Below are positions 1-59,850 of a stretch of DNA of 64,000 nt, piece by piece. How positions within the stretch are numbered: position 1 is the stretch's first letter; each line of letters starts with the position of its first letter. Below the pieces are notes generated by a model. The model did not search any database and was not told the origin of the DNA. It was given only the letters and a program-made list of their open reading frames with translations. The stretch covers positions 8,494,001 through 8,558,000 of the forward strand of contig NC_043026.1 in assembly GCF_006345805.1 (NCBI RefSeq), in the 5' to 3' direction. Position numbers and translations under genes: made by a program. The stretch is from Octopus sinensis (taxonomy: Eukaryota).

Positions 1-2098
1 CATTACTGAATATTTCCTTATTCGTTTCAGATGTAATGGAAGGGAAACGAAGACCAGAATCAAGATTTGATAATGACACAGATTCCAGAATGTTCACTTG
101 GTCCCCATCAATCTTTATGCAATGACATTCAATCAATTCAATATGTGCACACCAGTAAATATTTCCCACTTTTCTCCATATCACACCATAAGGTACTTGA
201 CTTTCCCAAACTTTATATTTCCCCAAATTTTCTTGCTTCAGTTGAAATATTTCTCGTCTGTTAGGGACCGTGACCATTATGCCTCTTCCATGTGTAAAAC
301 ACACACCACCAACTAAACTTCCTAGATCTCTGTGGCATAGCAATTCCCCATCTCTATCAAACATTTTAACATTTCCATTATTGGCTTTTTCACACACAAC
401 TGTCTTTCCTTCATCAGAGATGTCAATATCTTTCACCTGAACAAGACATTCGTCTGTTTGTAAATGACAAACAGGGAATTTTTCCCGATTAAGCTGAAAC
501 AAACCTTCAACATACAATTTATCTTTGTTGTGGCTCCCAGCAAAACGTGGACCATTACAGTTTATACTTGTGAAATCTATTTTATCTTTATAAATTCTAC
601 TATTTATAAATATTCTGTTGTATTCTCCTGTCTGTGTCAAACAGACTAAGCTGTTATAGCCAGTGAAATCACCATAACGATCCCACCATCCATAAATGTA
701 CAAATAACTGTCATCAATTGTCATGTTGTTGTATTTAATATCATCATAAGCCATGTAGTGTCTAACTGAATGCAAATACTGACCACCACTGTTGAAGAAT
801 ATTATGAATCTTCTATTGCTGACAATGATGACACCATTAGCAGTAACTATAATATTACAGATGTAATTAATAAGTCCACGTCTGTCTTTCGTTAATGTCT
901 CAGGTATGCCTATTTGTTTTATTATATTCACGGTTGAATGTTTTTCGTCTATAACGATAACATACAAATTACATTTATCTCTATATTTACTACACAACAG
1001 TTGATTGTTTGATAAAGAAGCAATACATTTATATTCATTTCTTGTCAGGTAGGTTACCGACGACAATGGGAACCCAACTTTTAAAGTCAACAATTGGGAC
1101 TTAGCACCATAAGTTGTAATGACCAGTGTGTTTCTCTGCCAACGACACATATTAATAGGAAAAACATTCAATTTGATAGAGTCCACAAGTTGACCGTCAA
1201 ATGTGAATATCTTAATGTTTTTATTATTCCAGTCATATGACGCTATCAGGTTATTTTCAATAACACACAAACGGCGAATGTACACTGGTTTTTGGTCTCC
1301 AAAACCTGAAGGGACAACGACATGTCTAGCTTTGTCAGAAACTGTCAGGTCCTGTAGATATAAAGTGGAAGACAACATTTCACTGACAGAAATGTTTCTG
1401 GAAAATACATCCACCAGGTCGATATAATAATTAAGTTGATTATTTGTAACGAGATCATTAACTAACAAATTATGATTGTTTATGGCAAACATACGGCTTC
1501 TGTCTATCAGATAAACAAATATTTTATCAATAGATCCACCGCAGAGATTGAGGGGACGTTTCACTTGGGACATTAAAACACTGGGGACCATCTTACTACT
1601 ACTATAACCACCACCACAGATACTAGTGTTGTAATGAAAGGCTATTTTCCTAGTAACAATTAATAATTTTCGTGTTTCATTTTCTATTGCTAATGATTTC
1701 ACAAACACAGGGATATTAATTGTCTTAAGTACTTCGACTTGATTATAATAATTGATGGCTAAAATATCTAAATGTGATGGATTATCACAGTAACAAACAA
1801 TTTCACATTCACCCATCTTACACACCCGTACATAAGGCTGCCTTAATGATACACTTCTCACTGTCTTTGATAGGTTTCCGATGACCCTTAATTGTTTCTG
1901 TAGGGGTAATGTGACCCCTATATGATTAGAACCCCACTAACATATATCTGTGGCTGTAGACAGCAGAGATAATCTGGGCACAATGTCTCCTTCCTCAGAA
2001 ATGCACGACAAGCAATCATGCTTGATGTCGGACACCACCAACTGTCCATTGGACAGATTACATATTTCGCCAATGACAAGTTTTTGGTCATTCTCCTT
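1..2098 (-). pseudogene. Out-of-frame remainder of paralogue A (propellers 3-5, continues beyond the window start)
   Basis: Manual translation gives KENDQKLVIGEICNLSNGQLVVSDIKHDC..., then one in-frame TAG at 1937..1939 (DIC*WGSNH vs DICRWDSNH in B and C). The frame is then open to position 1 (...GLRFPSITSETNKEIFSN), matching B and C. Confidence 0.85.
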
Positions 2099-2099
2099 T

Positions 2100-4223
2100 T
2101 CATAGATTTAGATTTTTGAAAGAAGGATTTTTAATGGGTAAACAACAGCCAGACGACTGGTCTTGATACTTGTAAAGAAGAACCCTGTTGAGTTGAGTGT
2201 CGGGGACATTAAGAGTTCCTTGGAAAACAGCAATGTGAGGGTGAACAGGGAAAGGCAGTTCCCACTGCCATTTCATTTCTCCATATAGATCGTAACATCT
2301 GAGAATAGAGTGTCTCCTGAAGAGGACATAGAAATAAACATTATCAGAGTAGATGTGACGAGGGTAGCCATAGAATGGAAGGTATTTTTGAAAAAGTTCT
2401 TCACCACATGTGGAATAAAATACCATTTTATTTTCGTTTCCATCTACGACTACAAAATTAATTGGAGTTGCAGCAATGCTGACATTATGATGTCCCAGAG
2501 AAATTCTTTTTGCAATGTCAACTTTATCTTCATTGATCAATAGGATATGGACCTCGCTTTTGTTTTCAGTGGTGGTCACAGCCAGACACTTATTTGATAC
2601 AATATGACATATTTTCATGTAACCAGTTTGCACCTTTATTAAAGGGCCTTTTCTTAGTTCAGGACAGGTGATATACTGAAACCCTTTCATTTCACGATAA
2701 AAGACCAGGAATCTGTTTGTGTTTATTCTACAAAGTGCAGAAGGTGAAGAATTAAAAGTTATATAATTTTGGCTATTTTTTCCCTCAATATCAGAGAGTA
2801 ATATAGCTTTCTTATTCCCGTAGAGCATTAATATGGAAGATGTTGACATAGGAAGAATATTTTTGACATTATAGAAATCCTCAATATATATATGGTTGAT
2901 CAGACTGGGTGTACATAGCTGGTTGCTGTAAGACGGCTTGAACCAAAAATCTTTAGTTGTCCCTATATTATGCAGAACCCCAAAATAATCAGTCAAGAAA
3001 ATAGTATCTGAGCAAACGCAAAAATACCGACATTTCATTCCAATTTCCCTCTTTGACACACCACCCTTACCTGAAATCCGATAAATAATATGTCCCTGGA
3101 GGACATAAAAATGGTTTTGGTACACAGTGATGCTGGTTGGGAGATCCAGAGAATGGGTCTCTACCTCAAATATCTGCTGGCCATCCACATCGTAACAGGT
3201 AACTCTGTTAATATTAGCAAATGCTATTAACAGGTTACCTTGTGGACCAACAGCAATATCTGCAGGTATCTCTTTGCCAATAAATTGAGTGATAATTCTA
3301 TTATCTTCCCAATCAATGAGGAATATGGTCTTACCAAACAGTTCTACACCTATAAGCGTAGAATGTTCCAAATAAGAAACCAAGATTAATCCTAGCTGAA
3401 TTCTTTTGATTTTAAAACTTAAAGGGTTGATAATAAGAATCATTTTTTTGAAGGGGAGGGTGGCCAGGACTGTGTCTTCACTGATTCTAGTAAAATCAGT
3501 GACAGAAGATGAGCAATGAACTTCATTTCTGTTGCCGTCTCTTGTTATACAACATATTGTCATACAGTGGCGGGAATATGTTACAATACCCCCTTGTATG
3601 ACAACAATATTGGATATGGGGTTGCTTAAGTCTTCACCAGATTCCTCAATCTTTGCTTCTCTGGTTACAACCGAAGAATGTGGCCGAAATTTCTTGATTA
3701 TTTTTGGTGCCTCAATGATTTTGTGTTTGTCTTGCAAAACATTTGTCTTAATGTATTGTTCCAAAAAACATTCAAGTTTTCCTATAATACTAAAATCTTG
3801 GCTGTAATCATATTCCTTAATGTCTTTCTGCAAAATTTCTATTCTCTGTGTAAAATCTTTTAGAAAATTATTTTCATCCAAACCAACACTTTTTAAAAAA
3901 GTACATATTTTTTCCCGAGAATTTATCAACAAATTAATTTTGTCTTCATAGGCATTGAACCTTGTATAATATACACGTTTGTCCAAAATATTTCGTCTTC
4001 CAATTATTTCCCAGTTTTTAGGGTCTCCTTTATGTCTTTTTTGTTTTGTTGTTGACTGAAATGAAGATCTTTTCTCGGACATTTCTCTCCTTGAACCGTC
4101 ATCTCTCTCATATTTACACCTTTTATTGTCAACTCCTTCTTCATCCCATTTTGGTGTCGAGTTCCTTAAAGCCCTTTTCAGAGGGATAAGTTTCCTTAAA
4201 GTATTTTCAGTCTGGTCTTCCAT
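2100..4223 (-). CDS. Multi-beta-propeller (NHL/TolB-like) protein, paralogue A, truncated 707-aa ORF (N-terminal region plus propellers 1-2)
   Basis: 707-aa ORF collinear with the first 707 aa of the intact 1781-aa paralogue at 26652..31997. It ends at NLNL* because an 8-nt net deletion (ctccttttc-a-tagatttag here vs ctccttttc-tttgagtcg-tagatttag in copy C) shifts the frame. Confidence 0.85.
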   Translation of the reverse strand: MEDQTENTLRKLIPLKRALRNSTPKWDEEGVDNKRCKYERDDGSRREMSEKRSSFQSTTKQKRHKGDPKNWEIIGRRNILDKRVYYTRFNAYEDKINLLINSREKICTFLKSVGLDENNFLKDFTQRIEILQKDIKEYDYSQDFSIIGKLECFLEQYIKTNVLQDKHKIIEAPKIIKKFRPHSSVVTREAKIEESGEDLSNPISNIVVIQGGIVTYSRHCMTICCITRDGNRNEVHCSSSVTDFTRISEDTVLATLPFKKMILIINPLSFKIKRIQLGLILVSYLEHSTLIGVELFGKTIFLIDWEDNRIITQFIGKEIPADIAVGPQGNLLIAFANINRVTCYDVDGQQIFEVETHSLDLPTSITVYQNHFYVLQGHIIYRISGKGGVSKREIGMKCRYFCVCSDTIFLTDYFGVLHNIGTTKDFWFKPSYSNQLCTPSLINHIYIEDFYNVKNILPMSTSSILMLYGNKKAILLSDIEGKNSQNYITFNSSPSALCRINTNRFLVFYREMKGFQYITCPELRKGPLIKVQTGYMKICHIVSNKCLAVTTTENKSEVHILLINEDKVDIAKRISLGHHNVSIAATPINFVVVDGNENKMVFYSTCGEELFQKYLPFYGYPRHIYSDNVYFYVLFRRHSILRCYDLYGEMKWQWELPFPVHPHIAVFQGTLNVPDTQLNRVLLYKYQDQSSGCCLPIKNPSFKNLNL

Positions 4224-17687: not shown

Positions 17688-18114
17688 ATCTTTCGTCTCT
17701 AGTAGACCTTTCCGTCGATTTCCGTAAAAAACTTCCTTTTTTTTTTACATATGGGCTTGCGGGAACTTTTGAAGTAATGAGAGCGAAAGAGACTAAGAGA
17801 AAGCGATTGTATGACGAGGGAAGTTCTTTTGAAGTTACCGTGCATGGCAAGCATTGATGTACATGTGTGTGTGTGTGTGTGTTTGATGGGGTGTGGGAGA
17901 CAGACAGTATGTTGTGTAAGTGAAGTGCTTCTGTTAGTGTGTGTAAAGAGACAGAGAGAGTAATGTGTGAAAGAGAGAGATAACTGAAATTTTTTACTCG
18001 GTGTATGTGTATATGTATGTATATTACTTCAAAAGTTCCCGCAAGCCCATATGTAAAAAAAAAAAAAAAAATTTTTACGGAAATCGACGGAAAGGTCTAC
18101 TAGAGACGAAAGAT
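17688..18114. mobile_element. MITE with ~85-bp TIRs
   Basis: atctttcgtctctagtagacctttccgtcgatttccgtaaaaa...catatgggcttgcgggaacttttgaagtaat and its reverse complement at ~18023..18114. Confidence 0.8.
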
Positions 18115-18269
18115 CGCCCATATTTTTATTGTTTTCGTCTCATTCCGTTACATGGTTAAAAATTTATTTCGAATGCTTCAACACGTATACATGTGGTGTA
18201 TGCAAGAGATTCGAAATAAAGGCACCTACCTTCTCTTCGCTCAGACGGAGACCCTTCAACGGTAATGGA

Positions 18270-18622
18270 TCCTTCAGAAACGTTAGCATGCCGGACGAAA
18301 TGCTTAGCGGTATTTCGTCCGCCGTTACGTTCTGAGTTCAAATTCCGCCGAGGTCGACTTTGCCTTTCATCCTTTCGGGGTCGATAAATTAAGTACCAGT
18401 TACGCACTGGGGTCGACGTAATCGACTTAATACCTATGTCTGTCCTTGTTTGACCCCTCTGTGTTTAGCCCCTTGTGGGTAGTAAAGGAATAGGTATTTC
18501 GTACGTCGTTACGTTGTGAGTTCAAATTCCGCCGAGGTCGACTTTGCCTTTCATCCTGTTGGGGTCGATAAATTAAGTACCAGTTACGCACTGGGGTCGA
18601 TGTAATCAACTTAATCCCTTTG
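18270..18622 (+). mobile_element. SINE dimer
   Basis: Same family as 10182..11332. Confidence 0.8.
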
Positions 18623-19189
18623 TAATGGATCCTTCAACACAGCCCGACCCGAACGCTAGAGATAGCAGCTGCTTCACCCAACCTTAACAACGTGCTGACC
18701 CCGTCTTACCCGCTCGGCGACCTGACTCGAAAAGGCAGAATGCTGCCCTCGCTCCGCGCGCGTCACCGCTGCCCCTTCCGGTCAGCCCCAAGTTCCGGTC
18801 AGCTCCCCAGCTGCTGACCTCATCCCACAATACATACATATTAACACACATAAATGTGTGTGTGTGTGAGAGAGAGAGATGGCTCTTGAGCACTACTGGC
18901 AAAATGTAACACAGTAACAACCTGTTGCTTGGTCGGGTTGTGGGCGACTAAACTGTATTCCTTTATTCCTTGTCTGTCCTTGTTTGTCCCCTCTGTGTTT
19001 AGCCCCTTGTGGGTAGTAAAGAAAAATATAGAGAGAGGAAAGAACAGAGGCGGGGATGAAACAAGGACAGTCTTACGCAGGGCTGGGGTTACAATCGTGA
19101 TACTTTACATGAAATACGGATGATAAATCGAATTTGACAATGAAAATGAAAAATGCAAATAAAAATATAATTATAATTAAATATAATTA

Positions 19190-19523
19190 GGCGCAGGAGT
19201 GGCTGTGTGGTAAGTAGCTTGTTTGCCAGCCACATGGTTCCGGGTTCAGTCCCACTGCGTGGCACCTTGGGCAAGTATCTTCTACTATAGCCTCGGGCCG
19301 ACCATAGCCTTGTGAGTGGATTTGGTAGACGGAAACTGAAAGAAGCCCGTCGTATATATATATATATATATATTGTCAAATTCATTGTCAAATTCGATTT
19401 ATCATCCGTATTTCATGTAAAGTATCACGATTGTAACCCCAGCCCTGCGTAAGACTGTCCTTGTTTCATCCCCGCCTCTGTTCTTTCCTCTCTCTATATA
19501 TTTCTTTACTACCCACAAGGGGC

Positions 19524-19591
<68 letters not shown>

Positions 19592-19743
19592 TAGGAGTGG
19601 CTGTGTGGTAAGTGGCTTGTCTGTCCGGGTTCCGGGTTCAGTCCCACTGCGTGGCATCTTGGGCAAGTGTCTTCTACTATAGTCTCGGGCCGACCAAAGC
19701 CTTGTGAGTGGATTTGGTAGACGGAAACTGAAAGAAGCCCGTC

Positions 19744-19745
<2 letters not shown>
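19190..19745 (+). mobile_element. Two tRNA-derived SINE heads (ggagtggctgtgtggtaag family) with (TA)n tails
   Basis: Copies at ~19190..19352 and ~19590..19745. Others at 44285..44440 (minus), 49382..49540, 60855..61262 and 61730..62160. Confidence 0.8.
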
Positions 19746-19825
<80 letters not shown>

Positions 19826-20574
19826 GACGGGCTTTGCGTATGTGAATCGCAGGGTTACGTCGTATATGGAGCCTCCACTTGTAGAAAATAGATATAAACA
19901 GTCTTTGACTGCCATTTCTAATTCTTTCGGTATGCTGCCTGCCCTTTTAATTATATTTACTATATATACGGAACTCTACAGAAGTTCCTGACGCTAAAAG
20001 TCATATTTACATACCGAAATTTACCGGTAAATAATTGTTGGTTATCGAAAAAACCATGAAAAATTATTTACCCTTTTTATTATATTACCATTTGGATTTC
20101 TTACTCCATTGCGATCATCCCGGTGGCGCGCATGGTAGAATTTTGGAGGGAAATTTGCGGTCCCAGTCGTTTACTTAGTTTTAACCTATGCACTCTCCCC
20201 CCACTATCTGATGTCGCATGGTCAGAGGTGAGGTTAGTTGGCATTTGATAAAGCTAACGAATATGGTGCTGACGAAAGAAATTAGGCAATTTCTCGCCTA
20301 CGATCTAGAAACATGTTCACCATTAACGGTAAGAGACTTTTCGCTTATTTTCTTTCCGATTTTACGTATGTGAATCGCAGGGTTACGTCGTATATGGAGC
20401 CTCCACTTGTAGAAAATGGATATAAACAGTCTTTGACTGCCATTTCTAATTCTTTCGATATGCGGCAGAGCAACCTGTTTCCTGCCCTTTTAATTATATC
20501 TATATATATATATATATATATACGAAGGGAACTTACTGTGTGATTGACCGTTATTAAGACAAAAGGAGCTATTT

Positions 20575-20685
20575 GAATGACCACTAAGTAAGGGGAGGGA
20601 GTACAGGTAAGGGAGTAAAAACGCGATTACAATGAACATTTTTACTCCCTTACCTGTACTCCCTCCCCTTACTTAGTGGTCATTC
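20575..20685. repeat. Perfect 47-bp inverted repeat with a 17-nt loop
   Basis: gaatgaccactaagtaaggggagggagtacaggtaagggagtaaaaa (20575..20621) and its exact reverse complement (20639..20685). Confidence 0.9.
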
Positions 20686-20837
20686 TAATAGTTCAGTCAC
20701 ATAGTAATTTCCCTTGCTTCACGGTCATTTTCATAGCAAATATTTTTTTTCATGGCCCAATAACTGATGAGATGCCAGCGTGGGTTTCTTTTCATATAAA
20801 AATGGAAAAAAAATTTAATATGATCCATAAAAATCCT

Positions 20838-21451
20838 GGGATCTTTTCCTTTTGAACGGCACATGTCAACAAAATTTCTAGTTAACTAAACACTTTTAAA
20901 CTTCGTATACTGGTAGAATGTGTTTATAAAACATCATTTTCTCTTGGTTTTATTGAGAAAATTCTATAGTTTGTAAGATATTTCGTTTGAAAATCCGGGC
21001 ATTTCGGCAATTTTAACCAATCGATTACCTCCATTGAGCTAAAATCATTTGCTGCGTCTAAAACTGAGACGACATCCTGTAACTAATCCTAAACCTCCCC
21101 CCTAACCCTAACCCTAAATTTTTTTTTCTTAATTGTTAAATTAATTTAATTCCATTGCTTTAGTTTTTTTTACACGCGTAACAATTAAATTAATTTAACA
21201 ATTAATGAAAAAAAATTTAGGGTTAGGGTTAGGGGGGAGGTTTAGGGTTAGTTACAGGATGTTGTGTCAGTTTTAGACGCAGCAAATGATTTTAGCTCAA
21301 AAGAGAGCATAGGATTGGTTAAAATTCGAAAAATTAAACTACTTTAAACAAACGAATTACAATTTTATCAAGAAAGCCAAGAGAAAAAAATGTTTTATTT
21401 TAAAGTGTTTAGTTAACTAGAAATTGTCTGCTGTTCAAAGGAAAAGATCCA
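20838..21451. mobile_element. Foldback MITE with long TIRs and internal telomere-like repeats
   Basis: gggatcttttccttttgaacggc...aaggaaaagatcc termini, with ccctaaccctaaccct / agggttagggttaggg internally. A right-half copy lies at ~60625..60843. Confidence 0.8.

Positions 21452-38414: not shown

Positions 38415-38445
<31 letters not shown>
35880..38445. repeat. Two ~1.1-kb (TATG)n tracts
   Basis: ~35880..36940 and ~37255..38445; they generate the many MYVC/IHTY pseudo-ORFs. Confidence 0.95.
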
Positions 38446-38447
<2 letters not shown>

Positions 38448-38864: not shown

Positions 38865-39253
38865 GCCTTGTCTGGCACGTAAAAAGCACCATCCGATCGT
38901 GGTCATTTGCTAGCTCACCTGGCCCCCGTGCCAGTGGCACGTAAAAAGCACCATCCGATCGTGGCCGTTTGCCAGCCTTGTCTGGCACCTGTGTCAGTGG
39001 CACGTATAAAGCACCATCCGATCATGGCCATTGCCAGCCTCGTCTGGCACCTGTGCCGGTGGCACGTAAAAAGCATCCAATACACTCATGGAGTAGTTGG
39101 CGGAGTTAGGAAGGGCATCCACCTGAGAAACACTGCCAGATCAAGACTGGGCCTGGTGTCAGCCTTCTGGCCAGCCAGACCCAGTTGAACCGTCCAACCC
39201 ATGCTAGCATGGGAAAGCGGACGCTAAACGATGATTGATGATGATATATATAT

Positions 39254-39286
<33 letters not shown>

Positions 39287-39594
39287 AGGCGCAATAGCCC
39301 AGTGGTTAGGGCAGCGGACTCGCGGTCGTAGGATCGCGGTTTCGATTCCCAGACCAGGTGTTGTGAGTGTTTATTGAGCGAAAACACCTAAAGCTCCACA
39401 AGGCTCCGGCAGGGGATGGTGGTGATCCCTGCTGTACTCTTTCGCCACAACTTTCTCTCACACTTTCTTCTGTTGGCCTGCTCGCTTAGCCAGCGGGGTG
39501 ACGTCATTTAAAGGCTAAAACAATGCGAAGCACATTGTGACCAGCGATGTGTAGCAACATCTGAATAGCCTGGTCGGTCACGGTGGTCACAGTG

Positions 39595-39625
<31 letters not shown>

Positions 39626-39787
39626 ATATATAGATCTATATATATATACCATATATATATGTATATGTATAGAAAACACTGCCAGATCAGACGGGCCTGG
39701 GCAGACTTCTGCTTCCCAGATCCCCGGTCGAACCGTCCAACCCATGCCAGCATGGAAAGCGGACGCTAAACGATGATGATCATGATG

Positions 39788-39835
<48 letters not shown>

Positions 39836-39965
39836 TATGTATAGAAACACTGCCAGATCAGACTGGGCCTGGCGCAGCCTTCTGGCTTCCAAGACCCCAG
39901 TTGAACCATCCAACCCATGCTAGCATGGAAAACGGATGCTAAACGATGATGACGATGATGATGAT
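38865..39965 (+). mobile_element. Cluster of LINE 3' UTR tails and a tRNA-derived SINE (~39285..39590)
   Basis: Three ...cggacgctaaacgatgat-type tails plus a ggaggcgcaatagcccagtggttagg head. Confidence 0.7.
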
Positions 39966-41083
39966 ACACACACACACACACACATACATAACTATGAACA
40001 AATCTCTCTCTATATAAACGGCAGTTTGTCTGTGTGCGTGTCTGTGTGTCTGTTAGGTTGTACCCTCACCCTGACCACGGCTTTCAACTGATTCTGATGA
40101 TGAAACTTGACACAACATAGCCCAATGTCATAATTCAAAAACTAACGCAGCGAAAATTTTGAAAAGTTCCCCAGTTCTGAAAAAAAATCGATAAAAATTC
40201 GACATGGGGTCGAGAATCAGAACACAAACCACAGACTGTCTAGGGGACGCAACTCGACCTTTTTAACTAAAAAAAAAAATTTACCATCATTTTTTTCCCA
40301 TGTTTTTGCTATTTTTTGGCTATAACTCTCTAAAAATGCTTTATAGTTATTTCCCTTACAAACCTGAGCAACGCTAGTATATATATATATATATATATAC
40401 TGCTAGTATATATATATATACACCAGTAAATATATACATTGATAATCCTAGGAATGCCGAATAGAATTTCTATCCCTATCTCGTTCCCAAACGAATCGCT
40501 GGTTAATTTAGAAGTAATTATGTAATTAAAAAACAATTCCAGTAATCAGTAAGTGATAATTGCAGAAATTAGGTTGACTTAACCCTTTAGCATTTAACCC
40601 GGCCAAAATATTTTTCCTATTTTATCTTCAAAGTGGCCAGATCCAGCCTTTCACACCTACCCTACAATCATCATCATCATCATCATCCACATCGTTTAAC
40701 ATCTGCCTTTCATGGTGTGGCATGGGTTGGATGGTTTGACTGAGGACTGGCAAACCAGGAGGCTGCTCCAGGCTCCAGTCTGATCTGGCAAGGTTTCTAC
40801 AGCTGGATGCCCTTCCTGATGCCACCCACTCTGAGAGCATAGTGGGTGCTTTTCACCTGCCACCAGTACAAGAGCCAGTTAGGCAGCACTGGCATCGAAC
40901 ATGCTCAAATGATGCTTTTTATGTGCCACCGGCATGGGAACCAATCAGGTGGCACTGGCATCAACCACGCTCAAATGGTGCTTTTTACGTGCCACCAGAA
41001 TGGGAGCCAGTCCAGCGATGTAAATATATAATAGATATGATATAATAGATATAAGCATACATGTATATATGTGGTGTGTGTAT

Positions 41084-41116
<33 letters not shown>

Positions 41117-41898
41117 TATATATATGTATGTATGTATGTATGTATACACACACACACACAAAGATAAATTGATAGATACAAACTGAGTGGGCAAACAAAA
41201 ATATGAGACATTGCCTAGTGCTTTTTTATTTTGATAAGCCTGGTACTTATTCTATCAGTTTCTTCTTATGAAACCAGTAAGTTATGGGGATGTAAATAAA
41301 CAAACAGCAGTTGTGAAGCAGTGATGAAGGAGAAACACAAAGACACACACACAGACATACATGAATAATATCGGCAACTCCTTAAGACAATAAAATGAAT
41401 AAATTAAATAAGTAAGTTTTATTGACTTTTTGATAAGATTATACTTAGATTTTCCTAATGTATTTTCTTTTGATTTTAGCATCTGACCCCTAAACCCCTG
41501 ACTGTGTTATCTCTTTAGATTCTCTTTAAATTCATAGCTGATTTCAACAGCAATAAATTAGCTGTTTTACTGGCCAAAGAATAATATTCTCCTCTAGTTC
41601 CTAGATGCCTGTAAATTAAAACCAGACTTGCCGTCTACTAATTGTCTGTATAACTAGAACCTCTTTTTATTTATTTTTTCCCTTCTTCCCATTTCTTTCT
41701 CTTTCTCTCTTTTTCTGTTTCTTCTCTTATTCTCTTTTCCTTTTCTCTTCTCTTTTAGTCCCCTTTCCCCCCTTTTTTGCTCCCTCCTCCTTTATTTTCT
41801 CTCTTTTCTTCTATTTCCTTCCCTTCTATTCTTGGCCTCTCTAGAAAGCCTTCAGCCTTTAAAAGTTAAATAGCTACAGCCTCTGTAAATAGCAGTAA

Positions 41899-42609
41899 TG
41901 TGATTATGTAGCAAATACCTAATCATATAACAAGTTTTGATACCTACCTCATTGTGTTCAACCATTGATAAATTTATCACCTGTGAATATGAGATTCCTC
42001 TTCATTCTCTGGAAACTTACATCTACACCATTGGAAATTGTGCATCTATACAAAGGATTAATTCACCCTCTCTGTAATGCTAATAAGCAGGAATTGAGAC
42101 CCACCTCGTTGTGATTAACAATGGATAAATTTGTCTTCTGTGAGTATGTAATCCCTCATCATATCTCTGGAAATTCATATGTGCTCTATGGATTAGGTCA
42201 CCTTCTCTGTGATGCTATTAGAACTTTTTTAAAATTCTGTGATAAGACTGTACATCATCTTTAAAGAACTTTAATGAACTTTGGAAATCTGTTTATGTTA
42301 CTTAATTATCTACATTACTTCATGAGTATAGCCTCAACCACTAGGATGTCTAGAGAACTCACATGTATTTTAGCTGATGAGTACGGGACACGTTTAAATG
42401 CTGTAATTTTTACAACTTTTAATAAAGCCTGTCCTTGTATGAAACGATTGTACTAAAACCTATCTATTTTTTGCTTCTTTCTCGCTTATAATCACCCCAC
42501 ATTACTGTATTGTTTAAAACAGTATAGTTTTCTTTTGGTGCATCTAAGTTAGGTACCATATTCAAGTAAATTCATTTAAATTAACTTGAATCTTTATGCT
42601 TTTTGTATA

Positions 42610-42705
<96 letters not shown>

Positions 42706-43980
42706 TCAAAGAGCAATAAAGATTCAAGTTAATTTAAATGAATTTACTTGAATATGGTACCTAACTTAGATGCACCAAAAAAACTATACTGATTTAACAA
42801 TACAGTAATGCGGGGTGATTATAAGCGAGAAAGAAGCAACAAGAATGGATAGGTTCTTAGTACGATCGTTTCATACAAGGACAGGTTTTATTAAAAGTTG
42901 CAAAGATTACAGCATATAAACGAGTCCCGTACTCATCAGCTAAAATACATGTGAGTTCTCTAGACATCCTAGTGTTTGAGGCTATACTCATGAAGTAATG
43001 TAGATAATTAAACAGATTTCTAAAGTTCATTAAAGTTCTTTAAAGATGATGTACAGTCTTATCACAGAATTTTTAAAAAAGTTTTAATAGCATCACAGAG
43101 AAGGTGACCTAATCCATAGTGCACATATGAATTTCCAGAGATATGATGAGGGATTATATACTCACAGAAGACAAATTTATCCATTGTTAATTACAACGAG
43201 GTGGGTCTCAATTCCTGCTTATTAGCATTACAGAGAGGGTGAATTAATCCTTTGTATAGATGCACAAATTCCAATGGTGTAGATGTAAATTTCCAGAGAA
43301 ATGGAGATGAATTTCATATTCACAGGCGATAAATTTTTCAATGGTTGAACACAATGAGGTAGGTATCAATTCTTGTTATATGATTAGGTATTTGCCACAT
43401 GATTAACAAAATTGATACCTACCTCATGAATAACAAGAATTGATACCTACCTCATTGTGTTCAACCATTGAAAAATTTATCGCCTGTGAATATGAAATCA
43501 TCTCCATTTCTCTGGAAATTTACATCTACACCATTGGAATTTGTGCATCTATACAAAGGATTAATTCACCCTCTCTGTAATGCTAATAAGCAGGAATTGA
43601 GACCCACCTCGTTGTAATTAACAATGGATAAATTTGTCTTCTGTGAGTATATAATCCCTCATCATATCTCTGGAAATTCATATGTGCACTATGGATTAGG
43701 TCACCTTCTCTGTGATGCTATTAAAACTTTTTTAAAAATTCTGTGATAAGACTGTACATCATCTTTAAAGAACTTTAATGAACTTTAGAAATCTGTTTAA
43801 TTATCTACATTACTTCATGAGTATAGCCTCAAACACTAGGATGTCTAGAGAACTCACATGTATTTTAGCTGATGAGTACGGGACTCGTTTATATGCTGTA
43901 ATCTTTGCAACTTTTAATAAACCTGTCTTGTATGAACGATCGTACTAAAAACCTATCCATTCTTGTTGCTTCTTTCTCGC
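41899..43980. repeat. Triple-arm inverted repeat (700-bp arms around a TA/CA spacer plus a third inverted copy)
   Basis: Arm 1 41899..42605, arm 2 42707..43407 (inverted), arm 3 43430..43980 (inverse of 42825..43379). Confidence 0.9.
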
Positions 43981-44230
43981 GTATATATATATATATATAT
44001 ATACTCTTTTACTCTTTTACTCTTTTACTTGTTTCAGTCACTTGACTGCGGCCATGCTGGAGCACCATCTTTAGTCGAGCAAATCGACCACCGGGACTTA
44101 TTCTTTGTAAGCCCAGTACTTATTCTATCGGTCTCTTTTGCCGAACCGCTAAGTAACGGGGACATAAACACACCAGCATCAGTTGTCAAGCAATGCTAGG
44201 GGGACAAATACAGACACACAAACACACACA

Positions 44231-44271
<41 letters not shown>

Positions 44272-44769
44272 TATATATACATATATACGACGGGCTTCTT
44301 TCAGTTTCCGTCTACCAAATCCACTCACAAGGCATTGGTCGGCCCGAGGCTATAGCAGAAGACACTTGCCCATGGTGCCACGTAGAGGGACTGAACCCAG
44401 AACCATGTGGTTAGTTAGCAAGCTACTTACCACACAGTCATATATATGAATGTATGTATATATGTATATATATATATATATGTATGTATGTATGTATGTG
44501 TTTGTTTGTTGTTTGTGTTTGTCTCTCCACCATCGCTTGACAACCGATGTTGGTGTGTTAACGTCCCCGTCACTTAGCAGTTCAGCAAAAGTGATCAACA
44601 GAATAAGTACTAGGCTTACAAATAATAAGTCCTGGGGTGGGGTGTCGATTTATTCAACTAAAGGTAGTGTTCCATCATGGCCGCAGTCAAATGACTGAAA
44701 CAAGGAAGCGAAACGAGCACTTGTACATCTATGCATGTACGTACGTTTGTATGTGTACGAGTATATACG

Positions 44770-44997
44770 TGGGTATATGTATGTATGTATGTATATGTAT
44801 GTATGTATATGTATGTATGTGTGTATGTATATGTATGTATATGTATGTATGTATGCATGTATATATGTATGTATGTATGTGTGTATGTATGTATATGTAT
44901 ATATGTATGTATGTATGTGTATGTATGTATGTATGTATGTATGTATGTGATGTATGTATGTATGTATGTATGTATGTAATGTGTGTATGTATGTATG

Positions 44998-45031
<34 letters not shown>

Positions 45032-45467
45032 TGTATGTATGTATGTATGTATGTATGTATGTGTATGTATGTATATATGTATGTATGTATGTATGTATAT
45101 ATGTATGTGTATGTATATATGTATGTATATATGTATGTATGTGTGTATGTATATGTTTGTATATATGTATGTATATATGTATGTATATATGTATGTATGT
45201 ATGTATATATGTATGTATGTATGTATATATGTATGTGTGTATGTATGTATGTATATATGTATGTATGTATGTGTGTATGTATATGTTTGTATATATGTAT
45301 GTATGTATATATGTATGTAGGTATGTCTGTATGTATGTATGTATGTATGTATGTATATATGTATGTATATATGTATGTATGTATGTATGTATATATGTAT
45401 GTGTGTATGTATATATGTATGTATATATGTATGTATGTGTGTATGTATATGTTTGTATATATGTATG

Positions 45468-45501
<34 letters not shown>

Positions 45502-45653
45502 TGTATGTATGTATGTATGTATATATGTATGTATGTATGTATATATGTATGTGTGTATGTATATATGTATGTATATATGTATGTATGTGTGTATGTATAT
45601 ATGTATGTATATATGTATGTATGTGTGTATGTATATGTTTGTATATATGTATG

Positions 45654-45687
<34 letters not shown>

Positions 45688-45750
45688 TACATGTATGTAT
45701 GTATGTATGTATGTATGTATGTATGTATGTATGTATATATGTATGTATGT
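44770..45750. repeat. (TATG)n tract
   Basis: Seen directly. Confidence 0.95.
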
Positions 45751-46494
45751 TAAAGCATTCCAAATATATTTTTATTCACGTACAGAAAGCAGGCAAAAAG
45801 CCTAAAACAAGTGGTTGTTGAACAATAAGCATTGTTCTATGGAGGTATTGTTGGAAATGAAGTAAAGAAAGAAAGAAAGACAGAGATATGAGTCAGAGAG
45901 GTGGGGGTCAGAGATAAGTCATCGCTGATAAACATATGTACGTATATACATACTAAAACACACACACACTGTTGCAACAAAGCACACACATACACCACAC
46001 TACAACATACACATAAGCCTCACTCATGCACACATACACATATGTACACAGTCCTACATATACTTGAAACATGACCCGGACAAAGTAGCGCCCACATGTC
46101 TAGAAGCTTCGCTCTGATGTTTTGTAAAAATTACATGGGCTGTTGCCGCGGTAACAGCTTTGCCCATTTCAACAAATTGAGCTTTCACGATATTCTGAAG
46201 ATTGAAAAAATTTGAGGCTGAAGTTGAAATCCTGTCACTGGCTTTGGTAATTATTACTTTGAAAATAATCTTAATTAACACACAATTTAATAATATATAT
46301 ACATCGTTAAACATTTTCCAGTTTTACTTCAAACATGAATATACTAATTGCAGCGTGGAAGGTGTTTATAAGCCATTTAAAACACACACAAAAACGTTAG
46401 ATTCACTTCAACATTTAGATTTAATTTGCCAAAATATTTTCGTTGCTTTGAGACTGCGATCTGTTCACTGACAAAATTCAGTGTTGCATAATTA

Positions 46495-47095
46495 TACCTA
46501 TTTCTTTACTACCCACAAGGGGTTAAACACAGGGAGGACAAACAAGGACAAATGGATTAAGTCAATTACATCGACCCCAGTACGTAACTGGTACTTATTT
46601 AATCGACCCCGAAAGGATGAAAAGCAAAGTCGACCTCGGCGGAATTTGAACTCAGAACGTAACAGCAGACGAAATTCCTATTTCTTTATTACCCACAAGG
46701 GGCTAAACATAGAGGGGACAAACAAGGACAGACATAGGTATTAAGTCTATTATATCGACCCCAGTGCGTAACTGGTACTTAATTTATCGACCCCCGAAAG
46801 GATGAAAGGCAAAGTCGACCTCAGCAGAGTTTGAACTCAGAACGTAACGGCAGACGAAATACCTATTTCTTTATTACCCACAAGGGGCTAAACACAGAGG
46901 GGACAAACAAGGACAGACATAGGTATTAAGTCGATTATATCGACCCCAGTGCGTAACTGGTACTTATTTAATCAACCCCCGAAAGGATGAAAGGCAAAGT
47001 CAACCTCGGCGGAGTTTGAACTCACAACGTAACGGCAGACGAAATACAGCTTCGCATTTCGCCCTGTGCGCTAAGGTTTCTGCCAGCTCGCCGCC
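46495..47095 (-). mobile_element. SINE trimer
   Basis: Three body units plus a head (gccagctcgccgcc). Confidence 0.8.
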
Positions 47096-47580
47096 TTCGT
47101 GTTGCATAAATATAGCCCCATTATCAAGACTTCCTTTTGTAACCCCCAAAAGAACTCCCCTTAATATTTGATTTTTTCTTTTTTTACATAAACCTCTTTT
47201 CCTATACCGTTATATTGAAATTCGTTTTATTTTCAGATAATATTTTTATAAGACTACAAACTGTGAAAACATTTTACAAGTAAGATATTTCGTTTACATT
47301 TTCCTATCCATTTTTTCTTTCCTTCTTCATCCTGTTCCATTTATTTTAATTCCTGTTTCAGATTTATACTTTAAATGTGGTTTTGTATGCCATATTATCA
47401 GATACATCCGTGTTATATTCCAACAAAATAACATATAGTTATAACTATTAAAGATTATTTGCCAACAAATGGTTAGGACGGATGTTACTGTTAAATTCTG
47501 TTGGCAAATAATTTTTACTCTAGAATATTGTTATTTCAGAGATTTAGAAATAAAAAAAATTTTCTATGTAAAAAATATTT

Positions 47581-48599
47581 GGGATCTTTTCGGTTTGAAC
47601 GGCAGTTTTTAACATAATTTTTAGGTAACTAAAAAATTTTAAACTTCGTATACTGGTAGAATGTGTTACATAAAACATCTTTTCCTCTTGGCTTTATTGA
47701 GAAAATTCTATAGTTTGTAAGATATTTCGTCTTTAATTTCAAGCATTTTGGCAATTTCAACCAATCACTCACGTCTATTGAGGTAAAAAAATATTCTGGG
47801 CCGTATGAATATGTCCCTTGTTTAAGAAACAGATTGGGGATCTTTTCTGTTTGAACGGCAGTTTTTAACATAATTTCTAGGTAACTAAAAAATTTTAAAC
47901 TTCGTATACTGGTAGAATGTGTTTATAAAACATCATTTTCTCTTGGCTTTCTTGAGAAAATTCTATAGTTTGTAAGATATTTCGTCTTTAATTTCTTGCA
48001 TTTCGGCAATTTCAACCAATCACTCACGTCTATTGAGGTAAAAAACATTCTATGCCGTATGAATATGTCCCTCGTTTAAGAAACAGATTGGGGATCTTTT
48101 CTGTTTGAACGGCAGTTTTTAACATAATTTCTAGGTAACTAAAAAATTTTAAACTTCGTATACTGGTAGAATGTGTTTATAAAACATCATTTTCTCTTGG
48201 CTTTATTGAGAAAATTCTGTAGTTTGTAAGATATTTCGTCTTTAATTTCTTGCATTTCGGCAATTTTTACCAATCACCGACCGTCTATTGAGGTGAAAAC
48301 ATTCTGTGCCGTATGAATATGTCCCTCGTTTAAGAAACAGATTGGGGATCTTTTCTGTTTGAACGGCAGTTTTTAACATGATTTCTAGGTAACTAAAAAA
48401 TTTTAAACTTCGTATACTGGTAGAATGTGTTACATAAAACATCTTTTCCTCTTGGCTTTATTGAGAAAATTCTAGAGTTTGTAAGATATTTCATCTTTAA
48501 TTTCTTGCATTTCGGCAATTTCAACCAATCACTCACGTCTATTGAGGTAAAAAAATATTCTGTGCCGTATGAATATGTCCCTCGTTTAAGAAACAGATT
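47581..48599. repeat. Four-copy ~254-bp satellite derived from a MITE terminal region
   Basis: Units start gggatcttttc at 47581, 47837, 48091 and 48345 and are homologous to the left arm of 20838..21451. Confidence 0.9.
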
Positions 48600-54499: not shown

Positions 54500-57400
54500 A
54501 TGGAAGACCGGATGGGAAATAGTTCAACACTCACATCCCAGAAAACAGCTTTATGTCAATCAGCAACAAAAAGTGTTGAAGAAGGAATGAACAGCAAAAA
54601 GTGTAAATATAGGAGAGAGAATGACTCAAGGAGAGAAATGAGACAGAAAGGAGACCCTAAAAACTGGGAAATAATTAGAAAACGAGATGTTTTGGACAAA
54701 CACATATTTTATACAAGGTTCAATGCATATGAAGACAAAATTAATTTGTTGATAAATTCTCGGGAAGAAATATATACTTTTTTAAAAAGAATAGGAATGG
54801 ATGAAAATACTTTTCTAAAAGATTTTAGAAAGAGAATAGAAAATTTTCAGAAAGACATTAAGGAATATGATTATAGCCAAGACTTTACTATGTTTGGAAA
54901 ACTGGAATTGTTTTTGGAAAACTATTTAAAGACAAATGTTTTACAAGACAAACACAAAACCATTGAACCACCAAAAATAATTAAAAAATTTCGGCCTCTT
55001 TCTCCAGTTTTGACCAGAGAAGCAAAGATTGAGGAATCTGGTGAAGACTTAAGCAACCCAATATCCAATATTGTTGTCATACAAGGGGGAATTGTAACAT
55101 ATTCCCGCCATTGTATGACAATATGTTGTATAACAAGAGACGGCAACAGAAACGATGTTCGTTGCTCATCTTCTGTCACGGACTTTACTAGAATCAGTCA
55201 AGACACAGTCCTGGCCACCCTCCCCTTTAGAAAAATGATTCTTATTATCAACCCTTTAAGTTTTAAAATCAAAAGAATTCAGCTAGGATTAATCTTGGTT
55301 TCTTATTTGGAACATTCTGCGCTTATAGGTGTAGAAATGTTTGGTCGGACCATATACGTCATTGACTGGGAAGAGAATAGAATAAAATACGAATTCATAA
55401 CCAAAGAAACCCCTTCAGATATTGCTGTAGGAGCACAAAACAAACTCTTAGTATCCTTTTTCAATATTAACAGGGTTACCTGTTACAATGTGGATGGCCA
55501 GCAGGTATTTGAGGTGGATACCAATTCCCTGGACATCCCAACCCACATCTCTGTGTACCAAAACCATTTTTATGTCCTCCAGGGACATATTATTTATCGG
55601 ATTTCAGGTACAGGTGCTGTGACAACAAGAGAAATTGGCATGAAATGCCGCCATATTTCTGTTGGCAAAGAAAACATTTTTGTAACCGATTATTTTGATG
55701 TCCTTCATATCATTGGAACAAATGAAGACTTTTGGCCCAGGCAGTCATATAACTCCCAGCTATGGACCCCAAGATTGAACAACTATTTTTATATTGAGGA
55801 TTGCTACAATGTTACTAATATTCTACCTATGTCTACATCTTCTATATTAATATTCTACAAGAATAATAAAGCTATTTATTCACTGAGACTGGAGAAATAA
55901 TTAACCAAAATAATTCAACTTTCCTTGAGATTCCTTCTTGCTTTTGTAGAATGAATTCTAAAGGATTTCTGGTGTTTTACCGTGAAAACAAAGAATTTCA
56001 GTGTATCACATGCCCTGGGCTAATGAAAGGCCCTTTAATGAAAGTCCATACTGATTACATTAAACTATGTCATATTGTATCAAATAAGTATTTAGCTCTA
56101 ACCACAAATGGAAACAAACACGAGGTCCATATCCTCTTGATCAAGGAAGATAAAGTTGACATTATAGAAAGAATTTCTCTGGGACATTATAATGTCAGCA
56201 TTGCTGCAACTCCAATTAATTTTGTAGTCGTAGATGGAAACGAAAATAAAATAGTATTTTATTCCACATGTGGTGAAGAACTTTTTCAAAAATACCTTCC
56301 ATTCTATGGCTACCCTCATCACATCTACTCTGATAATGTTTATTTCTATGTCCTCTTCAAGAGACACTCTATTCTCAGATGTTACGATCTATATGGAGAA
56401 ATGAAATGGCAGTGGGAACTGCCTTTCCCTGTTCACCCTCACATTGCTGTTTTCCAAGGAACTCTTTATGTCCCGGACACTCAACTCAACAGGGTTCTTC
56501 TTTACAAGTATCAAGACCCGTCGTCTGGCTGTCGTTTACACACGAAAAATCCTTACATCAGAAATCTAAATCTACGACTCAAAGAAAAGGAGAATGACCA
56601 AAAACTTGTCATTGGCAAAATATGTAATCTTGCAAATGGACAGTTGGTGGTGTCCGACATCAACCATGATTGCTTGTTATACATTTCTAAGGAAGGAGAC
56701 ATTGTGTCTAGATTATCTCTGCCGTCTACAGCCACAGATATATGTCGATGGGATTCTAATCATATAGGTGTCACATTACCCCTACAGAAACAATTAAGGG
56801 TCATCGGAAACCTATCAAAGACAGTGAGAAGTGTATCGTTAAGGCAGCCTTATGTCCAGGTGTGTAAGATGGGTGAATGTGAAATTGTTTGTTATTGTGA
56901 TAAACCATCACATTTAGATATTTTAGCCATCAATTATTATAATCAAGTCGAAGTAATTAAGACAATTAATATCCCTGTGTTTGTGAAATCATTAGCAATA
57001 GAAAATGAATCAAGAAAGCTATTAATAGTTACTAGGGAAAAAGCATTTCAGTACATCACTAGTACCAATGGTGGGGGTCATGTCAGGAATAGTAGTAGTA
57101 TTAAGATGGTCCCCAGTGTTTTAATGTCCAAAGTGAAACATCGTTCCAATCTCTGTGGTGTATCTTCTGATAAAATGTTTGTTTATCTGATAGACAGTAG
57201 TCGAGTTTTCACCATAAATGACTATAATTTGGTGGTGAGAGATTACATTACAAGTAATCAACTTGATATTCATGTCGACCTGGTAGATGTATTTTCCAGG
57301 AACATGTGCGTGAGTGAAATGTTGTCTTCTAAATTGCATCTCCAGGATCTGACAGTTTCCGATGAAGCCCGACGCATTCACGTTGCTTCCCGGTCTTTTG

Positions 57401-57595
57401 TAGATAAGCAACAAGTGGATACTCAGAGTTTGGTTATTACTGAAAACAACCTGATCGCGGGATTCGACAGGAGGAATAAAAACATCAAGATATTAACATT
57501 TGATGGCCACCTACTGGACTCGGTCAAATTGAAGGTCAACAATATCAAGATGTATCACTGGCACCCAAATGCCCTGGTTATCACAACCGATGATG

Positions 57596-57639
<44 letters not shown>

Positions 57640-59850
57640 GGTAATGAGAAATGTCGACTGTTGACCTTAAAAGTTGAATTTCCATTGTCGCTGGTAACTT
57701 ACCAGACGATAGATAGATACGAATGTATCGCTTCTCTGTCGGACAATCAACTGGTGTGTATTAAACGGGAAGATGAATGTATTTTGTATGTTGTTGACAT
57801 TGACGAAATCCATGCGACTGTGAATGTAATAAAACAAATACATTTCTCTCAGGTACAATCCTGGAGAGACATCTATGATCTTATAATTACAGCCGGTGAT
57901 GTCATCATTGTCACTAACTCAAGATTCCTAATTTTCTTCAACCGTGATGGTCAGTATTTACATTCAGTCAGACATTACATGGGGTATGTCAATAAATATA
58001 ACAACATGATAACTGATGACAGTTACCTGTACATTTATGGTCAGTGGGACAGGTATTGTGACTACAAAGGATATAAAAATATTGTGTGTTTGACCCAGAC
58101 TGGTGAATACGACAGAATATTTTTGAATGACAGAATTTACAAAGATAAAGTAGATTTCTCCTGTATAAACTGTAATGGATTAAGGTTTGTTGGAAGCCAC
58201 AGGCACACTAATAAATTCTATGTCGAAGGATTGTTTAAGCTTAGTCGGGAGAGATTCCCTGTTACTCATTTGCAAACAGACAACTATTCTGTTCAGGTGA
58301 AAGATTTTGATGTCTCTGAGGAAGGAAAGACAGTTGTGTGTGAAAAAGCCAATAATGGAAATGTTAAAATATTTGATAGCGATGGGGAATTGCTATGCCA
58401 CAGAGACCTAGGAAGTTTAGTTGGTGGTGTGTGTTTTACACATGGAAGAGGCATAATGGTCACGGTCCCTAACAGACGAGAAATATTTCAACTGAAGCAA
58501 GAAAATTTGGGGAAATGTAAAGTTTGGGAAAGTCGAGTACCTTATGGTGTAATATGGAGAAAAGTGGGAAATATTTACTGGTGCGCACATATTGAATTGA
58601 TTGAATGTCATTGCATAAAGATTGATGGGGACCAAGTGAACATTCTGGAATCTGTGTCGTTATTAAATCTTGATTCTGGTCTTCGTTTCCCTTCCATTAC
58701 ATCTGAAACGAATAAGGAAATATTCAGTAATGAATTAATTAATAAATTGGAATACAGTGGCGGAGATGAAGTGGAAAGAGGTAAATCAGGTGAAATAATT
58801 GGTAAAGGTAGATTAAAGGTGAGATGTGGTAATTACATAGCGGAGAGTAAGCCAGGAATTGATGAAATATCAGTGAGGAGACTTCCATATAGGACAGCAA
58901 TGGTCCCTTTTTCCATTCCTGCATTTGAGGAACCTGTTAATTATTTTTATGGAAACATTAAGGACCGGAATAGTAAACTAATTAAGTTAGATGAGAATGT
59001 GAGTGTGTTGATGTTTCGAGAAAGTGTCACATTAATCAGAACAACAACAACAACAGTGGACATACTTCAACATGAACAACTACCACAACCACCACTGGAC
59101 ATATGTCGGTGGACAGAGGAATGTTTCATTGTCGCCTTTGGTGAACAACTGATGTTCTTCAACAGGGATCTCCGTCGTTTAAAAACCATCAACAGTGAGA
59201 AATTCTACAACAGGATTTATAAATACAATGACAATCAACTCGTGTGTGGCGGTGGCCACTATGAAAGCAATAACAGTGAAGGTGTGTGTGGTGGTTATTA
59301 TGTTGGGCAAATTAAGAGTGGGCAACACAGTTATTATGTAGATGTAGTTGAGATTGATGGTGGCACATGTGAATACATTCATGAAGTTTGTTCCGGGGTG
59401 AATGAAGAGGTGGAGAATGTTGTGTTTGTAATGGATATAGTAGTGACATCTGGTGGTGATACTGTTGTTGTGGAGGAGGAAAGGGAGAGATGGAGGCGGG
59501 ACGTTTGCTATTATTTCCGATGGTACAGGGAGCAGTTGGTTAGGGTTATAAAGCTCCCAGCGTATCGAAATTCTTATTTTTATATACCTTTTCTAACCAC
59601 TCAAAGACAATATGTTTATATAACGGATAAAGATAATAATATTTACCAAATACCTGAATATATTGCACAGCAAACATCTACAGGTATTGAATACCTGACA
59701 TTTGATCGTATCAGCCAATATCTCCTCCTTAGGGGTGAAGATAATGAAGTTTACAAAATTCTTGGTTTTGATATTTCGGACAATTCTTTCATGGTTTTTG
59801 GAATCATTCCAGGACGTCAATCATTTGCTTTCTTTCATTATGACAAATAA
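54500..59850 (+). CDS. Paralogue C of the multi-propeller gene, split by a single 1-nt deletion (ORFs 54500..55900 and 55951..59850; 1783 aa if repaired)
   Basis: gctatttattcactgag at 55871 vs gctatattattcactgag in B: one A is missing between 55875 and 55876. Both flanking ORFs align to B end to end and share the C-terminus VFGIIPGRQSFAFF.YDK. Confidence 0.85.

Follow-up and report, generated by a model that had tools for sequence, protein, structure and literature searches.

Patchwork identity among three clustered paralogues of a giant beta-propeller-like gene in Octopus sinensis, with gene conversion as its probable source

The subject of this work is a stretch of 64,000 nucleotides (nt) of Octopus sinensis DNA (NCBI RefSeq assembly GCF_006345805.1, contig NC_043026.1, positions 8,494,001 to 8,558,000 of the forward strand), hereafter called the window, which holds exactly three copies, A, B and C, of an uncharacterised gene for a protein of about 1,780 amino acids (aa). 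A first-pass annotation, made from the letters of the sequence, had described patchwork identity among the three and ascribed it to an ongoing exchange of propeller modules inside the cluster. In this work we followed the relationships of the copies along their length, in the window and among seven further paralogues taken from Octopus vulgaris (GCA_951406725.2, chromosome record OX597841.1). We consider it probable, at roughly 0.85, that the patchwork results from repeated non-allelic (interlocus), non-crossover gene conversion, in which pseudogenes take part, within a family that evolves by birth and death.

The positions of the copies are given in Table 1. Neighbouring genes lie 22-25 kb apart in the window, with unique sequence between them. 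A canonical splice acceptor (polypyrimidine tract plus AG) ends about 7 nt before the ATG of B at 31997, and gene models of relatives, including that of the protein P0002, supply a short 5' exon ahead of the coding exon; the coding sequence of B is therefore essentially one giant exon. Copy A, in the sequence as given, reads as a pseudogene: 8 bp are deleted at about 2100-2103, and a stop codon interrupts the frame at 1939-1937. In C, the sole lesion is a 1-bp deletion at 55875/55876, which splits an otherwise open frame of 1783 codons into open reading frames (ORFs) of 466 and 1299 aa. C would be a very young pseudogene, or else a sequencing error lies behind the deletion.

Upstream of the genes, homology ends about 147-162 nt into the upstream intron in all copies (window 32144-32159, 4371-4385 and 54338-54353, and likewise at the loci L002 and L003), a common sharp boundary which suggests the edge of the original duplication unit. 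A and three of the O. vulgaris copies (D2, E1 and E2) have 336 nt of upstream sequence in common at 98%. The 150-350 bp of upstream homology first reported were thus about right, whereas the 20 bp given for the far side of the stop codon were too few: downstream homology reaches about 286 bp beyond the stop, although it is weak (about 66% identity).

The family protein has a basic N-terminal region, after which about six beta-propeller-like domains are predicted. A Pfam scan of B gave nothing above threshold and two sub-threshold hits, DUF4934 and the WDR90 propeller. BLASTP of B against itself found no internal repeats, so that the propellers are not recognisably alike and exchange between propellers within one gene is unlikely. 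Models of B were built with AlphaFold2 (AF2) from a family alignment of 24 sequences. They contain four confident all-beta domains at aa 201-427, 444-686, 972-1248 and 1479-1781 (predicted local distance difference test, pLDDT, about 80) and two further beta-rich stretches, aa 720-960 and aa 1249-1476, modelled with low confidence; the five propellers of the first-pass annotation are replaced by these roughly six beta-rich domains. The best Foldseek matches in the PDB for both halves of B were tandem beta-propellers (IFT-A subunits, Utp21, DDB1 and LRP4/LRP2), with a probability of 1.0 and E-values of 1e-21 to 1e-14 for both halves, at 7-12% identity and with whole-model template modelling (TM) scores of 0.13-0.26. 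As far as the models go, the resemblance to known propeller proteins would be one of generic fold only. The N-terminal 200 or so residues of B are basic and hydrophilic, and neither a signal peptide nor a convincing transmembrane segment was found in B, for which reasons the protein is probably intracellular. Pfam detected no receptor or signalling (immune-type) domain in B. The comparison with immune and allorecognition gene clusters made in the first-pass annotation is only an analogy, and the role that it hinted at is not supported.

Identity tracts along the coding sequence

The three copies were aligned by MAFFT and scanned in sliding windows, and tracts were placed by a four-state hidden Markov model over the variable sites. 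A, B and C change their nearest relative along their length, in a pattern of blocks (Table 1). The mismatch counts first reported proved exact. A 1321-1460 and B 29075-29214 differ at 1 of 140 positions, against 33 between A and C in the same place; 24 mismatches in 731 nt separate B 30400-31130 from C 55322-56051, against 170 between B and A; and A 130-350 differs from C 58383-58603 at 5 of 221 positions, against 45 between A and B. The N-terminal peptide is common to A and B, as had also been noted, whereas C differs there and has a 42-nt deletion. The third AB tract contains a perfect run of 137 nt, and the core homogenised among all three genes reaches 95-99% identity over most 150-nt windows.

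Of the 813 variable sites, 251 support the pairing of A with B, 191 that of A with C and 324 that of B with C, and they fall into 366 runs where 560 +/- 12.7 would be expected (z = -15.3). For the three pairings, the longest tracts of identity extend over 30, 23 and 38 variable sites, compared with permutation maxima of 14, 11 and 14; for all three pairings the observed lengths were attained in 0 of 10,000 shuffles. All three groupings claimed for the cluster therefore occur, each beyond what the permutations produced.

Silent sites follow the same blocks. Synonymous divergence (dS), calculated by the Nei-Gojobori method in windows of 60 codons, lies between A and B at 0.05-0.12 over codons 61-300, at 0.66-0.80 over codons 301-540 and at 0.06-0.13 over codons 541-840; between B and C it is 0.06-0.09 over codons 301-540 and 0.7-1.2 over codons 901-1080. 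A swing of about tenfold within one gene pair is taken to indicate differing coalescence times, and hence recombination. Since dS moves with the blocks, constraint at the protein level cannot account for them.

Neighbour-joining trees with bootstrap were then computed by segment for ten copies (A, B, C, Bv, D1, D2, E1, E2, F and G). For nt 235-560 the tree joins A and B with 100% bootstrap and places Bv with C. Over nt 850-1500, A falls outside a group of B, Bv, C, D1, D2, F and G (99.5%), whereas nt 1510-1640 unite B, Bv, C, D2 and F (100%) and nt 3811-4060 unite A and C (100%). Adding paralogues thus did not bring the segments into a single topology, and the ten-copy trees conflict at 100% bootstrap. 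A four-gamete test similar to the pairwise homoplasy index (PHI) gave z = -15.9 for nine copies. The Hudson-Kaplan minimum number of recombination events (Rm) was 127, which we do not use as an event count because recurrent mutation inflates Rm at these divergences.

Pooled over nine copies, synonymous diversity is about 0-0.04 at codons 571-690, in the homogenised core, and 0.25-0.42 in the hypervariable codons 961-1260 and 1591-1740, where the ratio of nonsynonymous to synonymous differences per site (pN/pS) rises to about 0.8-1.25. The ratio is 0.9-1.25 at codons 1081-1140, within the hypervariable stretch, and in windows of 30 codons it reaches 0.9-1.4 in a few and stays at 0.2-0.7 elsewhere. 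The patches with pN/pS of 0.8-1.4 could reflect diversifying selection or relaxed constraint.

The exchanged segments do not coincide with protein modules. The BC tract covers aa 298-547, from mid propeller 1 to mid propeller 2; the third AB tract, aa 916-989, spans the predicted junction of domains 3 and 4; the AC tract, which takes in aa 1296-1409 and beyond, is contained in domain 5; and the patch in which B differs from its O. vulgaris counterpart Bv, described below, covers aa 79-320, from the N-terminal region into propeller 1. The hypervariable stretch corresponds approximately to predicted propeller 4 (aa 972-1248), and four-gamete incompatibilities are dense there. Exchange breakpoints were not found at domain borders or introns, as the tracts cut or straddle the predicted domains of a single-exon coding sequence. 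Contrary to the initial proposal of reassorted propeller modules, the exchanged units are arbitrary stretches set by homology, as conversion predicts, and not whole propellers.

Relatives elsewhere and a patch in B

Most family copies sit on one chromosome of about 29 Mb, and dozens of them share stretches that are 98-100% identical. In nearest-neighbour scans, the version of nt 850-1500 found in B and C was also present in D1, D2 and F (96-100%), and in G over most of the tract. The version carried by A is at most 82% identical to every sequenced copy over most of this tract, with a maximum of 91% in any 120-nt window, and at most 71% identical to all 37 annotated family proteins. The version of nt 3811-4060 found in A and C is private to them: it is absent from all 37 annotated family proteins and from the seven other sequenced copies, which agree on a different version (96-100%). 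If any tract arose by direct exchange within the window, it is most likely this block, the only one that looks like a private exchange between A and C; as these two genes are mutually inverted, such an exchange must have been non-crossover. Tracts near-identical to those of the window otherwise recur in copies at distances of 50-150 kb, and the same chromosome carries them again at 2.4 and 10.3 Mb, so that the exchange was not confined to the cluster, as had been supposed.

E1 and E2, which are frameshifted in the reference, have 3 kb of upstream sequence in common at 97.5%. Intact genes have tracts in common with the putative pseudogenes A, C, E1 and E2. Compared as proteins, the O. vulgaris copies are 88-99% identical to one another in the core and domain-5 segments, where their identity to O. 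bimaculoides copies is 60-89%. Propeller 1 occurs as two versions, 94-96% and 63-67% identical to B, which have diverged more than the species. This pattern would be the classic signature of partial concerted evolution over old cassette-like variants.

An exhaustive HMMER scan of 1.84 billion representatives recovered only 24 clusters, and the named members examined all came from Octopus species or Argonauta hians; on this evidence the family appears to be restricted to Octopoda. Distant members on other chromosomes (the P0045 and P0039 clusters) are 33-48% identical to B and at least 90% conserved among O. vulgaris, O. sinensis and O. bimaculoides, which suggests that the family is old within Octopoda and that rapid turnover is limited to the cluster on the 29-Mb chromosome. 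We found no literature on this gene family or on gene conversion in octopus clusters. Some reference gene models (P0001, P0005 and P0010; L003:8460-30234) appear to be annotation artefacts: P0001 (2526 aa) merges two adjoining frameshifted copies, and in P0005 and P0010 a family member is joined to C2H2 zinc-finger or DUF4371 domains. A transposable element was considered and rejected, as no terminal inverted repeats surround the homologous unit (only a (TA)n tract), B has no Pfam match to a transposase, reverse transcriptase or integrase, and most copies lie on one chromosome.

The O. vulgaris locus of Bv, L001, is collinear with window 18027..48338 (about 30 kb), even through the intergenic repeats, and about 97.5-99% identical to it. 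Between B and Bv there are 108 coding differences, concentrated in one patch (Table 1). Its core, 31438-31763 (nt 235-560), contains 45 differences in 326 nt (13.8%) and the rest, nt 561-961, contains 23 in 401, against 34 in 4385 (0.78%) outside the patch (Fisher p = 2e-34). The proportion of synonymous differences (pS) is 0.185 within the patch and 0.015 outside, and the pN/pS ratio between B and Bv is about 0.4. Over nt 235-560 the states of B are nearly all those of A, and the states of Bv are those of C and D2. Both flanks, upstream intron included, are 98-100% identical. We read the patch as the likely footprint of recent conversion, possibly of several overlapping events, after the two sequences separated. 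Every junction of B outside the patch is reproduced in an independent assembly that is 0.8-2.5% different, which argues against a chimeric assembly of B. The background silent divergence of B and Bv, 1.5%, is about as large as the heterozygosity of 1.22% reported for O. vulgaris (PMC10700109). The two loci also differ at the 3' end, where in the O. vulgaris reference the final stretch of the gene, some 240 nt, is repeated twice more in tandem (about 82% identity).

The window is eukaryotic in character, with a GC content of 28-48% per 2-kb window and intergenic DNA rich in microsatellites and in arrays resembling short interspersed nuclear elements (SINEs). Because of the very long microsatellites, extreme GC and AT skews and overlapping spurious ORFs occur in the window. 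The SINE-like repeats and the arrays with units of 184-186 bp are intergenic and have no relation to the gene family.

Table 1. Gene copies, tracts and repeats, in window coordinates unless another record is named
Feature	Position	Strand	Remarks
Paralogue A	4223..1	-	window start cuts coding exon; about 1.1 kb of 3' end absent
Paralogue B	31997..26652	-	intact single coding exon, 1781-aa ORF
Paralogue C	54500..59850	+	inverted relative to A and B; open save one 1-bp deletion
AB tract 1	B 31806..31940; A 4032-4166	- (B)	A-B 94.1%, 74% to C
AB tract 2	B 31440..31548; A 3666-3774	- (B)	A-B 96.3%, 81.7% to C
BC tract	B 30357..31106; C 55346..56094	- (B); + (C)	B-C 96.7%, 76-77% to A
Homogenised core	B 29253..30211; A 1499-2437; C 56240-57198	- (B)	all three 92-94% overall
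AB tract 3	B 29032..29250; A 1278-1496	- (B)	A-B 95%, 71-73% to C
Hypervariable stretch	B 28113..29030; A 362-1276; C 57424-58371	- (B)	every pair about 77-79% identical
AC tract	A 20..359; C 58374..58713	- (A); + (C)	A-C 97.6%, 84.4% to B
B/Bv patch	31037..31763	-	68 differences in 727 nt
Patches with pN/pS 0.8-1.4 (nine copies)	about 28578-28757, 27948-28037, 26778-27137		B codons 1081-1140, 1321-1350, 1621-1740
D1, D2	OX597841.1, 21.87-21.90 Mb		
E1, E2	OX597841.1, 21.93-21.97 Mb		
Bv	OX597841.1, 22.02-22.05 Mb		protein P0002, locus L001
F	OX597841.1, 2.44 Mb		
G	OX597841.1, 10.3 Mb		
Extra 3'-end copies	L001:21253-22141		just downstream of the stop of Bv; none at window 26400-26900
Very long microsatellites	35898-38447, 44776-45750, 22259-23449, 59969-60623		(TATG)n 2.5 kb and 1 kb, (TC)n about 1.2 kb, (TCTA)n 0.65 kb
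Scattered SINE-like repeats	4635-4980, 5576-5880, 24685-25008, 38919-39249, 40668-41012		about 340 bp
Tandem arrays	7184-7553, 10223-11332, 33903-34273, 46494-47047		unit 184-186 bp

Origin of the patchwork

Under the conversion reading, a double-strand break in one copy would be repaired from a paralogous copy without crossover, and the repair would paste in a tract of roughly 0.1-0.75 kb. Repeated events would homogenise some segments across the family by concerted evolution, and other segments would persist as old, deeply diverged versions, with a different mosaic in each gene as the outcome; copies with frameshifts (A, C, E1 and E2) would participate too. We infer this mechanism of repair from the observed mosaic, and the same holds for the direction in which sequence was transferred and for the copy that donated a given tract. 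The shared tracts are internal and flanked on both sides by diverged sequence, C is inverted, and homology ends about 150 bp upstream and 290 bp downstream of the genes; these features fit non-crossover conversion and not crossover. The conversion proposed in the first-pass annotation is thus borne out by the clustering of sites, the drops in dS, the conflicting segment trees and the B/Bv patch. That it is ongoing is supported by this one recent patch, subject to the caveat on polishing given below.

The same mosaics might have arisen in the assembly, from mis-joined or mis-polished reads of near-identical paralogues. The many copies with stretches at 98-100% identity would favour such errors, and the reference assembly was made from Oxford Nanopore (ONT) reads and polished with Illumina short reads (PMC10700109). 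However, the near-identical stretches are at most 1 kb long, a length that long reads would readily cover, and the sequence on either side of them is 15-30% diverged; the genes themselves are 22-25 kb apart. The junctions of B, one patch excepted, recur in the independent assembly, and the block specific to A and C, like the private block of A (A 2583-3332), matches no other known copy and so cannot have been borrowed from one. We therefore hold an artefact of this kind to be very improbable. Scarcely better odds attach to the idea that the genes were chimeric from birth, through breakpoints that fell within genes during unequal crossing-over or segmental duplication, and underwent no later conversion. 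The cluster is a tandem array in which recent duplications are clear, as in the upstream sequence common to E1 and E2, and L001 has its extra tandem copies of the 3' end of the gene; but a single crossover leaves a single junction, whereas each gene contains many alternating switches. Moreover, the shared tracts are internal and their flanks were not transferred with them, a crossover of the inverted C with A or B would invert the DNA between, and the B/Bv patch has sequence of 98-100% identity on both sides.

Variation of selection or mutation rate along a single gene tree can be given next to no credence. Hypervariable regions do exist (codons 1081-1140 and 1621-1740, where pN/pS is about 1), but this explanation is contradicted by a dS that follows the blocks and by groupings that switch between AB, BC and AC at 100% bootstrap, as rate variation cannot alter topology. 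A further explanation would be a selected diversity system, in which conversion from a reservoir of copies, pseudogenes included, reshuffles the recognition surfaces of a family of intracellular sensors. It would agree with the combination of constant and hypervariable segments in the gene, with the tracts that pseudogenes share with intact copies, with the rapid turnover of a lineage-restricted family beside conserved single-copy relatives, and with the frequent service of beta-propellers as binding platforms. On the other side, pN/pS exceeds 1 solely in short windows and remains low between B and Bv, Pfam finds no domain of immune type, and neutral birth-and-death with conversion accounts for all observations; we regard selection of this kind as a remote prospect.

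Several observations weigh against gene conversion as we propose it, or limit its reach. L001 may be an allelic counterpart of the window, an orthologous one from a sister species or a very young (segmental) duplicate, and collinearity at this level of identity, intergenic repeats included, would suit all three. In the B/Bv patch both versions differ from every sampled paralogue (6.4% between B and A, 5.8% between Bv and C), which leaves either donors outside the sample or a patch of composite origin. As polishing may import paralogous variants, part of the patch could be an artefact. The junctions of A and C rest on this one assembled sequence, and no counterpart of either gene above about 78% identity was found among the 37 family proteins of the reference. 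The tracts common to A, B and C have since diverged by 2-5%, and no perfect run in them exceeds 141 nt, so that the majority of these events are not very recent. Finally, the profile of GC content at third codon positions (GC3) has no clear or convincing excess in the homogenised segments, and GC-biased conversion was dropped on this profile.

Comparison with known systems

Gene conversion among clustered paralogues is already textbook knowledge; it has not previously been described for this uncharacterised family. What the window adds is a clean, statistically overwhelming cephalopod example, with one patch separating two counterparts that are otherwise 99% identical. It also brings forward a family of giant, predicted multi-propeller proteins, apparently restricted to Octopoda, in which homogenised scaffolds, diverged cassette-like versions and hypervariable stretches occur next to conserved single-copy relatives, and which is a candidate for a lineage-specific innovation. 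For such a family, trees, orthology calls, estimates of the ratio of nonsynonymous to synonymous divergence (dN/dS) and the reference gene models, several of which are fused or truncated, mislead unless recombination is modelled.

By fold, B is likened by Foldseek to the WD40 subunits of IFT-A, to Utp21, to DDB1 and to the YWTD propellers of LRP proteins, although no Pfam propeller family reaches threshold. Non-allelic conversion in tandem arrays of large single-exon genes is known from the variable exons of the clustered protocadherins. Like the octopus family, these are tandem paralogues with one large coding exon, in which some segments are homogenised and others diverse, and the tracts are shorter than a kilobase and independent of domain borders. 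Unlike the protocadherins, the octopus protein has no cadherin repeats, signal peptide or transmembrane segment, and inverted copies, pseudogenes and copies megabases apart take part in its exchange. Conversion between a gene and an adjoining pseudogene is exemplified by CYP21A2 and CYP21A1P. There, as in the octopus family, disabled neighbours share conversion tracts with an intact gene, but the octopus genes have many potential donors and not one.

The closest match to the allorecognition analogy is offered by the fungal HNWD/NWD genes (het-d, het-e and het-r of Podospora), whose hypervariable WD40 propeller repeats evolve in concert. Both systems combine exchange between loci with hypervariable positions, and the octopus proteins, like the fungal ones, would be intracellular beta-propellers. 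In the fungal genes, however, the unit of exchange is the individual, highly similar WD repeat, and NACHT and HET domains are present, whereas B has neither internal repeat similarity by BLASTP nor NACHT or HET domains by Pfam. It is conceivable, though we think it unlikely, that the chromosome-28-like cluster is an octopod-specific repertoire of intracellular hypervariable beta-propeller sensors, for example in innate immunity or in the surveillance of genetic conflict, with conversion as a selected generator of diversity. If so, it would be a cephalopod counterpart of the fungal NWD genes or of pseudogene-templated receptor diversification.

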